DNA of 64,000 nucleotides, taken from Phaeosaccion multiseriatum (taxonomy: Eukaryota; Protista; Ochrophyta, other classes). Positions 1,812-37,788 of the stretch are shown here, piece by piece. The translations under genes and the position numbers were made by a program. The first letter of the stretch is position 1; each line of letters starts with the position of its first letter. Location of the stretch: NCBI GenBank assembly GCA_965112735.1, contig OZ218957.1, forward strand, positions 434,001 through 498,000, in the 5' to 3' direction. Under the pieces are notes generated by a model that saw only the letters and a program-made list of their open reading frames with translations, was not told the origin of the DNA and ran no database searches.

Positions 1812-2447
1812 TACACATACAAAATACAATTTCAATTAAGTGATGAAAAAAGGCTCCCAAAGAGTAACCTTGCTTGGCCGACAAACGCAACCCACACTCG
1901 CTGACCACACACACAACCACCCACGCACGCCCCCACCCACCTGCTGCTGAGACATCCTGATGGAAACGGAGAAGCGCATCTGCATGGCCTTCTGGATACA
2001 ACCCCCCTTGCCCATGAGGCAGCCCGTCAGCACCGCCGGGCCCAGGAACTTGAATACGGCAGCCTTCGCGGCAGGCTGAAGCTGCAGCACGTTGGTGGCG
2101 GTGGTGAGGGTAGTGATGGAGGAAGGGGAAGGAGGGGCTGCCCCTTCTGTTGGGGTCGAGGCGGTTGTGCTGGTGGTAGTCGGCGGCTCGGGCTTGGTCT
2201 CCTTGGGGGTCACGTCAAGAGTTGTGAGGCTTGAGAAGGAAGGCCCCCCGCTCCCATGGCTTGGGGCGAAGCACACTGCCGAGCGTAATACCTCCTCACA
2301 GGAGGGCGGAGACTCATCCACGCCTTTCATAGGCGGCCCTAGGGGCTTGCCTTCCGAGCCGACTGGCGGCTGGGCTGTTGTGGTTGGGGTGTCCAGGCCA
2401 CCCAAGGTCTCCTGCTTGCTCGGTGGGCTGCTGGTCAGGGTGGTCAT
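565..2447 (-). CDS. KH-domain RNA-binding protein (Nova/PCBP-like, divergent); spliced, 3' end not resolved
   Basis: ATG at 2447. Exon1 ends ...AVFKFLGPAVLTGCLMGKGGCIQKAMQMRFSVSIRMSQQQ|gt (1941), a KH GxxG loop. Exon2 1579-1690 GEQLRLDKTPYRVIMVTGKRPSDVAQAVAEMMAQMSN|gtgagt completes the KH fold. Exon3 from ~1396 continues in frame into the Thr/Ser-rich ORF 565-1386. Confidence 0.65.
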
Positions 2448-4048
2448 GGTGAGCTGAGCTGCCCCGAGCTTAGAGATATGAAACGTGTGTGCCTGCTCTT
2501 TGTATCTGCGGTCTATTCTGTGGTGGCTTCCTTCTGCTGGGTGATGGTGGTGGTGGTGGTGGTGATGGTGATGGTGATGGTGAAGTAGAGTAGTCAGGGG
2601 AGGAGAAAGGACGAAAGCAAACCACAACGGAGGTAGACTGTGAGCACGGAAAGGATGGCAACAAGGGCGAAGCGATACATTGATTAACAGATAAGGATAC
2701 CCTGGAATGCCCCATCCATACCCTTGTCCCCCCTCGCCTGCCTCAGTACGGCCCTCTGCGCTCGCTTGTGCCGTCCCATTCCGACGGAGTGTGTCCCACT
2801 GCTACTCTGCCCATCCACTCCCCCGCCACCGCCCCTTCCTCACTTACCTGCTCCTACCGCCAGGGCTTGTCCCTAGGCCCCCCCCTTGTGGTTCGTGGGG
2901 GGGCTTCGTTTATCTTATCCTTTGGCCCCTCCCGCTTCCGATGGTCTTAGAAGCTCTTGTCCCTCCTGTCTTGTTAGAGCACTCCTGCGTAGAGAACGAA
3001 GAGGCAAGGGGGAAGGGGTTTGAGGGAGCGAGCAGCGGAAGGGGATGGGGGAGGGAATGAGATTGCAGACAAGGGCTCCAAGAATGTCCCGCCGAAGCAC
3101 GAGGAGTGAGACGCTCTGGCAGGAAGAGCAGCGGAGCAGGCGTAAAAGTAGAGGCGGGCAGTCTCGTTAGAGCCCTCAAGAACAAAGCCAGTGGGGATGG
3201 GAATGCAGCATGGAGATGCATCGGAGGACACTGGCTGGGATCCTGTGGCCAACGCCACGGCGCGAGGCTATAGAAGCGAGTAAGCGAAGGCTAGAGCGCC
3301 TACTAGTCATTCTGCTGCTGTACTGCTAGCCTGTTGCTGCTATTGATGGGGGCACAAGCCTTCCTCTTGGCGGCTGTGAAGGAATCAACTAGCTGCGCAA
3401 GGGCTTTCCTCGCCACCTTTCCCGTACGAACGCGCTGTGCTTGGCCCTACTCACGCGAGTCTTGCCCACCTCCGCTCCCCCAGTGCCCAGTCAAGCTCTG
3501 GCGATATCTCTTCGTCCTGCCAAAACTCTTCTTCAACCTCTCCTCTCTCCCTCTCTCTTGGCTTCAACGCGTCCTCCGCCCTCGCTCCACCTCCCCTTTG
3601 TCCTTCCCTCCCGCCCCCTCCGTCTCACCTTGGGTCTTGTCAGCTCTCCTCCCGTCTCCCCCTTTCTCTATAGCGCCACCAAAGGAATAGTTCTCTTCCG
3701 CTTTTAAAAGTGATTGAGCCACTCAAAGCGTGAACTCAAACTGACTTCTCTCAGAGGGGAGGCCTCTGAAGGCCTCTTGTCAAGGCTGTGTGAAAATGAA
3801 GGACGAGGAGGCAGAAAGAGAGGCATAATGACATCAAGCAGCTTCGCAACAGCACTCCGACCACTAGGGCTGCGATGGCATGGCGTCAACAGCAGTGGGC
3901 ACAGCGGGTGTGCAAAATCCATTATTTACCTAACTGTCTGCTCTGTGGCTGTCCTCTTGGCGCTTCTCAGGGCAGGACCACACCCACGCGGCTCTCCGTT
4001 GCCTCCTCTTCCACGATCACTGACCACACCAAAGGTGCCAAAGGCGTC
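2445..4048. repeat. Inverted segmental duplication, copy 1 (partner 21059-22697): upstream region of the KH gene plus a dispersed element
   Basis: Reverse complement of 21059-22697 aligns by eye over ~1.6 kb with high identity. Near-identical ORFs appear on opposite strands, e.g. 3334..3690(+) vs 21394..21771(-) and 2768..2950(+) vs 22192..22398(-). Confidence 0.9.
3711..4048. mobile_element. Dispersed repeat / putative non-autonomous element, copy 1 of 3
   Basis: Starts TGATTGAG...CTCAAAGCGTGAACTCAAACTGACTTCTCTCAGAG. The same start occurs at 21400 (-) and 37616 (+) with unrelated flanks immediately outside. No transposase or TIR pair identified. Confidence 0.5.
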
Positions 4049-21058: not shown

Positions 21059-22697
21059 GACGCCTTTGGCACCTTTGGTGTGGTCAGTGATGTTAAACGA
21101 GAGGCAACGGAGAGCCGCGTGGGTGTGATCCTGCCCTGAGAAGCGCCAAGAGGGCAGCCACAGAGTAGACAGTTAGGTAATGAATGGATTCGCACACCCG
21201 CTGTGCCCACTGCTGTTGCCGCCACTGCCATCGCAGCCCTAGTGGTCGGAGTGCTGTTGCGAAGCTGCTTGATGCCATCATAGCCTCTTTCTTGCCTCCT
21301 CGTCCTTCCTTTTCATACAGCCCTGACAAGAGGCCTTCAGAGGCCTCCGCTCTGAGAGAAGTCAGTTTGAGTTCACGCTTTGAGGACATGACCTCAATCA
21401 GTCAAAACCCAACCTAAATTAGCTGGACTTCCTTTGTTGGAGCAATAGAGAAAGGGGGAGACGGGAGGAGAGCTGACAAGACCCAAGGTGAGACGGAGGG
21501 GACGGGAGGAAAGGACAAAGGGCAGGTGGAGCGAGGGCGGAGGACGCGTTGAAGCCAAGAGAGAGGGAGAGAGGAGAGGTTGAAGAAGAGTTTTCGGAGG
21601 ACGAAGAGATGTCGCCAGAGCCTGACTGGGCACTGGGGGAGCGGAGGTGGGCAAGGCTCGTGAGTAGGGCCAAGCACAGCGCGTTCGTACGGGAAAGGTG
21701 GCGAGGAAAGCCCTTGCGCAGCTAGTTGATTCCTTCACAGCCGCCAAGAGGAAGGCTTGTGCCCCCATCAATAGCAGCAGCAGGCGAGCAGTACAGCAGC
21801 AGAATCACTAGTAGGCGCTCTAGCCTTCGCTTACTCGCTTCTATAGCCTCACGCCGTGGCGTTGGCCACGGCATCCCAGCCAGTGTCCTCCGATGCATCT
21901 CCATGTTGCATTCCCATTCCCGCTGGCTTTGCTCTTGAGGGCTCTAACGAGACTGCCCGCCTCTACTTTTACGCCTGCTCCGCTGCTCTTCCTGTGAGAG
22001 CGTCTCACTCCTCGTGCTTCGGCGGGACATTCTTGGAGCCCTTGTCTGCAATCTCATTCCCCCCCCCAATCCCCTTCCGCTGCTCGCTCCCTCAACCCCC
22101 CCCCCCCTTGCCTCTTCATTCTCTACAAATGAGTGCTTGGAGACTAGAAGACTCAGCAACCGCAGAGAAGCTGGCTGGACGTGTCGCGAGTTCAGACAGG
22201 AGGGACAAGAGCTTCTAAGACCATCGGAAGCGGGAGGGGCCAAAGGATAAGATAAACGAAGCCCCCCCACGACCCACAAGGGGCGGGGGCTAGGGACAAG
22301 CCCTGACGGTAGGAGCAGGTAAGTGAGGAAGGGGCGGTGGCTGGGGAGTGGATGGGCAGAGTAGCAGTGGGACACACTCCGTCGGAATGGGACGGCACAA
22401 GCGAGCGCAGAGGGCCGTGTTGAGGCAGGCGAGGGGGGATAGCGTATGGATGGGGCGTTCCAGGGTAGCCTTATCTGTCAATCAATGTATCGCTTCGTCC
22501 TTGTTGCCATCCTTTCCGTGCTCACAGTCTACCTCCGTTGTGGTTTGCTTTCGTCCTTTCTCCTCCCCCTGACCAGTCCCCCTCACCATCACCATCACCA
22601 TCACCCCGCAGAAGGAAGCCACCACAAAATAAACTGCAGACACGAAGGGCAGGTACACAAGCTCTACAGCTCCAAGTCCTACTCGCCTCATCATGAC
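21059..22697. repeat. Inverted segmental duplication, copy 2 (partner 2445-4048); includes dispersed element copy 2 (21059-21400)
   Basis: Reverse-complement match to 2445-4048, ending at the paralogous ATGACCACC start codon (22693). Confidence 0.9.
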
Positions 22698-22744
22698 CAC
22701 CCCCCACACCCCCCCGAGCCACAGCCCCCCCCCGAACGTATGGC

Positions 22745-23618
22745 CGCACCTGCTGCGACATCTTGATCCTCACGGAGAAGCGCTGTTGCATGTTCTTCCG
22801 GATGGAGCCCCTTCTGCCCATGAGGCAGCCGATGAGCGATTCCGGGCACAGAAGCTTGAACACGGTCTCCTCCGCGGCCGACTGTTGCGGGGTGTCGCTG
22901 CTGGGGTGGGTGGGGGTGGAGGAAGGAGGAGCTTCCTCTGCTCTCCGGTCCACAGGAGAAGCTGTGGCGCCGGGGCCTGAGGAGGAAGCCCCCTCCCTCC
23001 CATGCCTCGGGGAGAAGCCCTCTGCCGCACGTCCTTCACTCAATGCCCCTTCTCTATTCGGGGTTGGAGAGCCCTCCACGCCTCCCTCAGGAGTCCCCGG
23101 GGGGCTGCCTTGCGAGGCGGCCGGCGGTTGGTTTGATAATGTCGAAGTGCTCGACAAGTGGCCCAAGGGCTCCTCACCAAGTAAGTGAGAAGCCCTTGGG
23201 CCACTTGTTGAGCACTCCAACAACATCAAACCAGCCGCCGGCCGCCTCGGAAGGCAGCCCCCCGGGGACTCCTGAGGGAGGTGTGGAGGGCTCTCCAACC
23301 CCAAGTCGAGAAGGAGTTTTGAATGAAGGACGTGCGGCAGAGGGTTTCTCCCCGAGGCATGGGAGGGAGGGGGCTTCCTCCTCAGGCCCCGGCGCCACAG
23401 CTTCTCCTGTGGACCGGAGAGCAGAGGAAGCTCCTCCTTCCTCCACCCCCACCCACCCCAGCAGCGACACCCCGCAACAGTCGGCCGCGAACGAGACCGT
23501 GTTCAAGCTTCTGTGCCCGGAATCCCTCATCGGCTGCCTCATGGGCAGAAGGGGGCGCCACCGTGGGGGCAATAGGACGGCGCTTCTCCGTGAGGATCAG
23601 CGTGTCGGAGAAGGTGCG
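22745..23618. repeat. Long inverted repeat / hairpin 1: arms 22745-23177 and 23185-23618, 7-nt loop
   Basis: ...GCCCAAGGGCTCCTCAC-caagtaa-GTGAGAAGCCCTTGGGC... The arms are reverse complements over ~430 bp and identical over ~140 bp (23347-23489). Confidence 0.95.
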
Positions 23619-24880
23619 TGGGGGCGTGCATTGGGGTGTGTGCGTGCGTGTGCGGGTGTCTTACAACCCTTTCTTGGGGAGCCTTTTTCTTTTCCATGAA
23701 ATTGAAATTTCTTGGTTTGGATTTGGCCTTTGTCCCTTGACCATAGGGTAGCGCATGAGCGGGTAGGGAGAGAGCATGGCTGCGGAAGAAGGGTCCAAGT
23801 AGAAGGAGAGGGGAGATGGCAGTGGAAGGGCGGGGAGGGAGGAGGCGGTGCTATTCATTTCAAGGACCTGCTGCAGCGTCATCGAAGAGAGGGGCCATTT
23901 GTGTGCTCGCCCCGCCTCGCGGCTGACTCCACGGCACTGGCACTCCTTCTCATTCCCTCATCACCATCATCACACTCCACTCCACGCCACTTTCCTGCGC
24001 ACTTCCGCAAGCAGGACGAACACCTCTTCCACGACGGGGAGCTCCATCGCGTGGGCACGGTCTGGGGGAGGCAGCACAGGGTTGCCGAAGCCGTGACTGA
24101 AATTGTGAGACGAATGCAGGCAAGTGTGGATCCAAACCCGGCTGTGCTGTGCTGTGCTGTGCTGTGCTGTACATGCTGCGGCTCCGTACATCTCCCTTGT
24201 TGTATCTGTCCTGCCCTACCCGTCTGCACCCATGTGTGCCTGTTGAGAAGTCATGTAGAGGCGACTGTGGCACCCCCAGCGCAAAGACAAGACGCTCGCT
24301 GGCAGTGCTCAAGGAGAGGGCTCGAGCGTCGTCGGCTTCGTTGGATACCCTTGCCACTGCTCCTGCTCAGCGGCAAGAGCAGCAGCAGTGTCATCCCCGC
24401 ACTCAAGCAATGCGCCAGCAAGAACCCCCGCCACACTCATCACAACTCAACACACCTCATCGCCTTTTGCCTCGATACAATACCGACAGGAGAGAGTGAG
24501 GGAGAAGAACACGTTGGAGGGCGACAAGAACCGAGGATTGCCCCTGCCCGACGCGGCCGCCTCATCCACCAACAACAACACCGCGACTGCCACCGCCAGT
24601 AGCACCATTGCACCTGCCCTTGAGCAAGAGGCAGCACCAGCCTCGTCCGTCTTGGAGGCCGCTCGAGGGGGTGAGGGGGGCGCCACTGGAGAGGATCCAG
24701 GGCCGGACTCGCCTAACTTGGTCAACGGGGAGGGCATTCAGGAGCGTGTGCCTATCGCTCCTCGGCAAGGCGACGAATATACATCCTCTGAGATCACAGT
24801 GATGATGCCCGACGAAGCATGGGAGTCCCTTTCAGGGAGGCGAGGAGCAGGAGGGGAACACGGAGGAAAGGGAGGGGGAA

Positions 24881-25142
24881 AGGGCCCCGAGGAGCTCAAG
24901 ACGCTGGCGGGCTTCACGGCGGAGTCGGAAGCCGTCAACAACGATGACCCCATCTCAGGAGAAAGAGTGGTGGTGATCCGAGGATACGAAGCCGGAGTCG
25001 CCGAGGCGTTGAGGCATCGAGGCGACTTCGGCTTCGTATCCTCGGATCACCACCACTCTTTCTCCTGAGATGGGGTCATCGTTGTTGACGACTTCCGCCT
25101 CCACCGTGAAGCCCGCCAGCGTCTTGAGCCCCTCGGGGCCCT
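24881..25142. repeat. Inverted repeat / hairpin 2: arms 24881-25002 and 25021-25142, 18-nt loop
   Basis: 122-bp arms with 5 substitutions and no gaps by manual alignment. Loop is GAGGCGTTGAGGCATCGA. Confidence 0.95.
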
Positions 25143-25199
25143 CGGCCCGGGCGTCTTCTCCTTTTCCTTCGAAGTCATCCCGACTATCAGGTTCGCGTG

Positions 25200-37612: not shown

Positions 37613-37615
37613 GAA

Positions 37616-37788
37616 TGATTGAGGCCACGTCCTCAAAGCGTGAACTCAAACTGACTTCTCTCAGAGGGGAGGCCTCTGAAGGCCTCTTGTCAGGGCTGTG
37701 TGAGAAGGAAGGACGACGAGGCAAAAAGAGAGGCTATGATGGCATCAAGCAGCTTCACAACAGCACTCCGAGCACTAGGGCTGCGATG
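37616..37788 (+). mobile_element. Dispersed repeat, truncated copy 3
   Basis: TGATTGAGGCCACGTCCTCAAAGCGTGAACTC...CACTAGGGCTGCGATG matches 3711-3877 and reverse-complemented 21228-21400. Confidence 0.6.

Follow-up and report, generated by a model that had tools for sequence, protein, structure and literature searches.

The inverted repeat at positions 22745-23618 (hairpin 1) is probably a real, locus-specific fold-back (inverted) duplication scar in a decaying KH-gene paralog, which was later patched by gene conversion and is at most a possible source of siRNAs. Positions are those of the window, i.e. the whole stretch of 64,000 nucleotides that was analysed. Most simply, hairpin 1 can be viewed as mutational debris in a decaying paralog. 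The locus provides a clean, reconstructable case of the birth of a gene-derived hairpin, in which the layouts of two related genes serve as before-and-after controls. The inverted copy appears to preserve an older form of the KH helix, which the resident exon has since lost; the resident exon seems to carry derived sequence shared with one of these relatives instead. If small-RNA data showed dicing here and at further fold-backs in the genome, hairpin siRNA loci would be documented at their origin in an ochrophyte alga. The features of the locus are listed in Table 1.

Table 1. Coordinates of hairpin 1 and of the associated features of paralog A in the window.
Feature	Position	Strand	Remarks
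Upstream region U_A of paralog A	21059..~22692-22719	+	Homologous to the U regions of C (4048->2418, minus) and of B (outside the window); only three full copies in the genome
Ancestral ATG and first ~11 codons of exon 1, paralog A	22693..22724	+	Matched by the ATG regions of B and C in alignment; no longer joined to the rest of the exon
C-rich filler, ~20 nt	22725..22744		No counterpart in B or C; holds the sole GT (22738) between the ATG and the left arm
Left arm	22745..23177	-	Inverted copy of exon 1 that begins at ~codon 13 and ends 5 nt beyond the splice donor; half KH domain intact, helix GSIRKNMQQRF (older, C-like)
Perfect block, left half	22873..23016		Pairs with 23346-23489
Loop, 7 nt	23178..23184		Fold-back centre within ancestral exon sequence: CACCAAGTAAGTGAG versus CACCGAGCAAGCAGGAG in C
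Right arm	23185..23613	+	Resident exon 1 of paralog A, which continues collinearly into intron 1 and the later exons; helix GATVGAIGRRF (B-like); extra G at ~23549-23553 breaks the frame
Perfect block, right half	23346..23489		Also 97.2% identical to paralog B
Intron 1, first 5 nt (GTGCG)	23614..23618	+	Outer edge of arm homology
Second fold-back, paralog A	24862..25161		Arms 24862-25002 and 25021-25161 (141 nt), 90% complementary, 18-nt spacer; derived from the end of the KH2 exon

Three paralogous KH-gene loci were identified when the window, extended by 20 kb upstream, was compared with itself, and genome-wide searches covered the 67-Mb, 22-contig assembly. Paralog A is located on the plus strand; its exon 1 is the right arm of hairpin 1, and its later exons extend to ~26700. 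Paralog C is located on the minus strand, with the upstream region running from 4048 to 2418 and exon 1 from 2391 to 1894. Paralog B, also on the minus strand, lies just left of the window (contig positions 425900-429531, or about -8100 to -4469 in window coordinates). Downstream of the right arm, intron 1, exon 2 (with the second half of KH1), and the KH2 exon follow in collinear order, and all are common to B and/or C. In the alignment, the start codons of B and C correspond to the ATG at 22693. In both of these paralogs, the upstream region and the ATG are joined straight to exon 1, and neither contains a left arm. The order in A is ATG, ~11 codons, ~20 nt of filler, inverted exon copy, loop, and resident exon. 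The ancestral stretch around CACCGAGCAAGCAG was found twice (22712-22724 and 23174-23188). The two occurrences form a short (~13-nt) imperfect direct duplication on either side of the insert, and they place the fold-back centre within ancestral exon sequence. The preliminary description had proposed an old symmetric palindrome with a KH gene on each side. The paralog comparison points instead to an inverted duplication on one side only, which involves exon 1 of paralog A and is absent from B and C.

Genome-wide, exon 1 is present in four copies at both the DNA and the protein level: the left arm, the right arm, B, and C. The upstream region was found at the three loci and as one 176-bp fragment. 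When the arm was searched across the genome for a transposon or a wider repeat, together with the gene body and the upstream region, only A, B, C, the 176-bp fragment (37613-37788), and simple repeats were identified, and a transposon or wider repeat was rejected. The fragment itself is 94% identical to 21229-21403 of the upstream region, in inverted orientation.

The three paralogs are in different states of preservation. Exon 1 of paralog C looks intact: the ORF that begins at the ancestral ATG is uninterrupted through the KH motif, and the exon contains a GKGG loop and a donor. Two deletions were found in exon 1 of paralog B, one of 1 nt located after the ATG and before the KH motif, and one of 39 nt; the KH2 region, which is kept in A and C, is absent, and the gene is apparently degenerate. 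Paralog A is probably a decaying gene, considering its cut-off ATG, its frameshift (one additional G), and the second fold-back at 24862-25161. From the displaced start codon of A, an ORF of 95 codons now extends through the left arm in antisense orientation. The stretch from the end of the KH2 exon that makes up the second fold-back is single copy in paralog C. Hairpin 1 and the second fold-back may have a common origin in one complex event. The arm divergence of the second fold-back is similar to that of hairpin 1.

The geometry of hairpin 1 was confirmed as it had been described, with ~430-bp arms and a 7-nt loop (CAAGTAA) at 22745-23618. The right arm of the repeat, including the first nucleotides of intron 1, spans 23185-23618. 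When the left arm was aligned globally with the reverse-complemented right arm, 38 columns differed or contained gaps, and the overall arm divergence is ~9%. In right-arm coordinates, the inner segment (23187-23345) has 89.3% arm identity, with 17 mismatches, 13 of which are transitions. The middle segment (23346-23489) is 100% identical over 144 bp. Arm identity is 95.2% in the segment 23490-23552, and 72.7% in the KH-helix segment (23553-23618). A difference-free run of 144 bp has P ~7e-5 if divergence is uniform over the whole arm, and P = 8e-4 by permutation within the inner 368 bp. These values agree with the earlier observations of ~140 identical bp in mid-arm, of about 90% identity and mainly transitions near the loop, and of clearly unlike KH helices. 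Uniform divergence, which had been named as an argument against that description, was checked by segment-wise alignment, and the pattern proved non-uniform (P ~8e-4). Both arms also stop just beyond the exon-1 donor, as had been noticed: donor-like sites are located 5 nt inside both arm ends (CAG/GTGCG in the left arm, minus strand; AAG/GTGCG in the right arm). Past GTGCG, arm homology collapses to 41% identity over the next 22 nt.

The preliminary description had also reported two ORFs that run through the loop into the KH frame. Both ORFs, 23043-23699 (+) and 22522-23304 (-), are present and cross the loop; on the plus strand, however, the KH frame is broken. The right arm contains one extra G in the G-run at ~23549-23553 (GGGGG) as compared with the left arm, B, and C (GGGG in the left arm and B). 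On the plus strand, GATVGAIGRRF (ORF 23323-23751) is out of frame with the preceding VFKLLCPESLIGCLMGRRG, and VFKLLCPESLIGCLMGRRG and GATVGAIGRRFSVRISVSEK occupy different frames; the KH frame is split because of the additional G. This G may be either a true lesion or an error of the assembly in a homopolymer. If it is an assembly error, paralog A might still code. The exons were compared singly with the KH_1 profile (PF00013), without a joined spliced protein model. The minus-strand ORF of the left arm scored 28.1 bits (cut-off 21.5) and matched profile positions 2-38 of 66, i.e. half of the domain. It is the best of the family and the only one above the Pfam KH_1 gathering score; the right arm (11.6), exon 1 of C (14.0), and KH2 (13.0) are below the cut-off, since each exon holds only a partial domain.

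Site polarity was assigned with B as the close comparator and C as the outgroup. In the inner segment (23187-23345), the left arm, the right arm, and B are nearly equidistant (89.3%, 92.4%, and 92.4% identity), and at least 4 derived sites are common to both arms across 23187-23552. The KH-helix segment (23553-23618) gives a different grouping: 10 derived sites are common to the right arm and B, and the left arm is the same as C there. The identities in this segment are 89% for the right arm and B, 77% for the left arm and C, 73% for the two arms, and 62% for the right arm and C. The left arm encodes GSIRKNMQQRF, C encodes GCIQKAMQMRF, and the right arm encodes GATVGAIGRRF; the left-arm version is nearest to the Pfam consensus. 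A donor for either helix version was found nowhere else in the genome. The helix divergence does not represent decay of one arm relative to the other; derived states are common to the right arm and B here, and the left arm retains the ancestral-like form.

The perfect block looks as if it had been recently homogenised from arm to arm. Since the segment trees conflict, at least two conversion events are needed. The second event would be an exchange between the resident exon and B, which did not reach the inverted copy. A further example lies next to hairpin 1. The upstream regions of A and C, which are mutually inverted and 17 kb apart, are 95-97% identical up to ~22590 and 66% identical thereafter; the exons of A and C share only ~65-70% identity. 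The A/C upstream tract looks like a recent gene-conversion tract, which accounts for the better conservation of the upstream DNA than of the exons. It shows that gene conversion has, by all appearance, been active at this locus. The tract comprises 21068-22588 in A and 2418-4048 in C, and the switch in identity occurs at ~22590-22667.

The arm-to-arm gene conversion proposed in the preliminary description is thus supported by the tract-like identity, the conflicting segment trees, and the conversion next door; the history is more complex than was proposed, and includes exchange with B. Arm-to-arm gene conversion is known from the human Y-chromosome palindromes and from plastid inverted repeats. 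Hairpin 1 resembles these systems in its tract-wise identity, its perfect 144-bp block, and its conflicting segment phylogenies, and also in the A/C conversion between inverted upstream regions across 17 kb. It differs from them in that the arms are short (433 bp) and only partly homogenised, and in that one end was exchanged with a third, non-palindromic paralog. A palindrome that predates the split of A and B, and that was later lost from B, e.g. by deletion between the flanking 13-nt repeats, would also fit, and matches the old-type helix of the left arm.

These comparisons suggest that the hairpin probably arose as a fold-back duplication. About 430 bp of exon 1 of paralog A would have been copied in reverse and set directly 5' of the source. 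A replication template switch or the snap-back repair of a break may have been the cause. The insertion would have left the 7-nt loop, ~20 nt of filler, and the ~13-nt imperfect direct duplication of the target, and would thereby have parted the ancestral ATG from the rest of exon 1. Conversion among the three KH loci would then have reshaped the arms, with the 144-bp tract homogenised between them. Fold-back inverted duplications that result from template switching or from the repair of hairpin-capped breaks share several of these features: the copy abuts its source with a 7-nt spacer, the outer junction contains filler, the insert is flanked by a short direct duplication, and the ancestral layout is intact in the unaffected paralogs. 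However, the event here is old (~9% arm divergence) and was reshaped later, and the microhomology at the junction is not convincing. The arm end within 5 nt of the exon boundary is possibly due to G-run/C-run microhomology blurred by divergence.

A transcript from the promoter of A itself would carry both arms, because the ancestral ATG lies 5' of the left arm. Such a transcript could form a ~430-bp duplex. RNA folding, which had been proposed as a check, predicted a stable intramolecular structure (-963 kcal/mol, z = -69) with a near-continuous duplex. The genome encodes a Piwi and PAZ Argonaute (contig C13), an RdRP (C1), and three RNase III loci. The predicted duplex would be a natural substrate for the encoded RNase III and Argonaute, and its products would act on A and B only. 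Between 113 and 158 of the arm 21-mers match B; with up to 2 mismatches allowed, none of the 21-mers from the two arms matches exon 1 of C, and other genomic targets of the arms beyond A and B were not found. In Phytophthora, which is also a stramenopile, no other source yields as much small RNA per Mb as inverted repeats, and a 714-nt inverted repeat gives rise to heterogeneous 21-nt siRNAs (PMC3804510). The dicing of hairpin 1 RNA is therefore plausible by analogy, given the RNAi genes and this precedent. Hairpin 1 is a possible siRNA source, for which the sequence matches point to degenerate targets only (A and B). Any such small RNAs are taken here to be a by-product, and not a selected function.

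Sequence changes between the arms were compared with respect to pairing and coding. In plus-strand RNA, 6 of the transitions give G-U wobbles and 8 give mismatches, and the numbers are reversed in minus-strand RNA; no excess of pairing-preserving changes was found between the arms. The selection on the duplex that had been suggested previously thus left no sign. The ratios of synonymous to non-synonymous codons are 7:9 between the arms, 6:9 between the right arm and B, and 4:7 between the left arm and B, which look near-neutral but are too few to tell. The Rfam search of the hairpin gave only sub-threshold matches to generic miRNA hairpins (29-41 bits, gathering scores 77-100), which were discounted. 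The loop junction had 0 matches in a metagenome scan, a result that is uninformative.

Drosophila hpRNAs and the Arabidopsis MIR genes born by inverted duplication are precedents for small-RNA loci of this type. Hairpin 1 has common features with such hpRNA and endo-siRNA loci (also including mouse oocyte pseudogene siRNAs, young MIR genes of Arabidopsis, and Phytophthora pin-IR2758, PMC3804510): its inverted repeat derives from a gene, extends over several hundred bp, and lies in a probable transcription unit, and Argonaute, RdRP, and RNase III are encoded in the genome. It differs in that its potential targets are only its own gene and a degenerate paralog, not the intact C. It is unlikely, in our assessment, that paralog A represents a selected non-coding hairpin source (endo-siRNA or proto-miRNA) that silences the KH paralogs, with conversion or selection keeping a perfect duplex core. 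The long stable duplex, the encoded RNAi genes, and the non-random 144-bp block are consistent with such a function, as are the positions of both arms 3' of the ancestral ATG, where they are probably co-transcribed, and the Phytophthora precedent (PMC3804510). The second fold-back within the same gene is also in its favour, and the similar divergence of the two could hint at selection and not at one messy event. In contrast, the arm 21-mers match only the damaged-looking A and B, and not the intact C; pairing is not favoured among the transitions (6 wobbles and 8 mismatches); and the perfect block is 97% identical in B as well, which has no hairpin. A more general proposal might be that this alga routinely converts surplus gene copies into hairpin-RNA genes. 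Fold-backs in the transcribed 5' ends of redundant paralogs would then be diced into siRNAs that silence the duplicate family, and conversion would keep the duplex core. We consider this quite unlikely. To our knowledge, an endogenous hpRNA pathway that polices gene duplicates has not yet been described in photosynthetic stramenopiles.

Three other explanations are less probable. The left arm might be spliced out as an intron (GT at 22738, AG at 23188-23189), so that the ATG is rejoined in frame to exon 1; paralog A would still be coding, and the extra G would be an assembly error. Only one GT is present between the ATG and the left arm, and it is in phase 0; the AG ending at 23189 resumes the KH frame exactly and is preceded by a pyrimidine-rich stretch. 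However, one third of donor-acceptor pairs are in frame by chance, and 3 of 9 acceptors fit. The donor GTATGG is unlike the family donors GTGCG/GTGGG, the putative intron pairs with the downstream exon so that its acceptor is buried in a 430-bp duplex, and the frameshift as assembled breaks KH1 regardless. An intron is thus very unlikely. The left arm has also been considered as exon 1 of a live minus-strand gene, spliced from the donor at 22750/22749 into exons in the upstream region. Its open frame, its family-best KH_1 score (28.1 bits), and its retained donor (CAG/GTGCGG) would be expected of such an exon; but no second KH half or KH-like exon is present to the left, where the DNA is the upstream region common to the three paralogs. 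The putative gene also has no start codon or promoter of its own, save ATGs inside the opposite arm, and its substitution pattern is near-neutral, which makes a live gene highly improbable. Palindromic chimeras are a known class of artefact, and hairpin 1 could in principle derive from a chimeric fold-back read or from mis-joined haplotypes in the assembly or library. The assembly is based on long reads, and the extra homopolymer G suggests residual errors. The 38 arm differences form a structured pattern, however; the left arm is the same as C at 10 bases where the right arm is the same as B, and its KH frame is open and better-scoring. The locus is internal to a contig of 3.67 Mb; its flanks are unique on both sides and show collinearity with the paralogs, and mis-joined haplotypes do not invert. 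The earlier argument that diverged arms speak against a read fold-back was thus strengthened, since the 9% divergence is structured and no artefact would create the C-like older bases of the left arm. There is very little likelihood of an artefact. The fold-back duplication of exon 1 in a decaying paralog, followed by conversion, is the explanation that we prefer.

Other repeats were observed in the genome and around the KH genes. Within the 200 kb sampled of contig C1, one fold-back was found, which is AT-rich, transposon-like, and not gene-derived. It is located at C1:1176762-1177171, has a length of ~410 bp and 82% self-complementarity, and contains TTTGACGCC-type sub-repeats in an otherwise GC-rich genome; it looks like a small foldback/MITE-type element. 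A CAC/CAT (His-codon-like) microsatellite is located just 5' of the KH start codons, at 22560-22605 in A and 2540-2600 in C. Long (GT)n tracts are present within the introns of all three paralogs.
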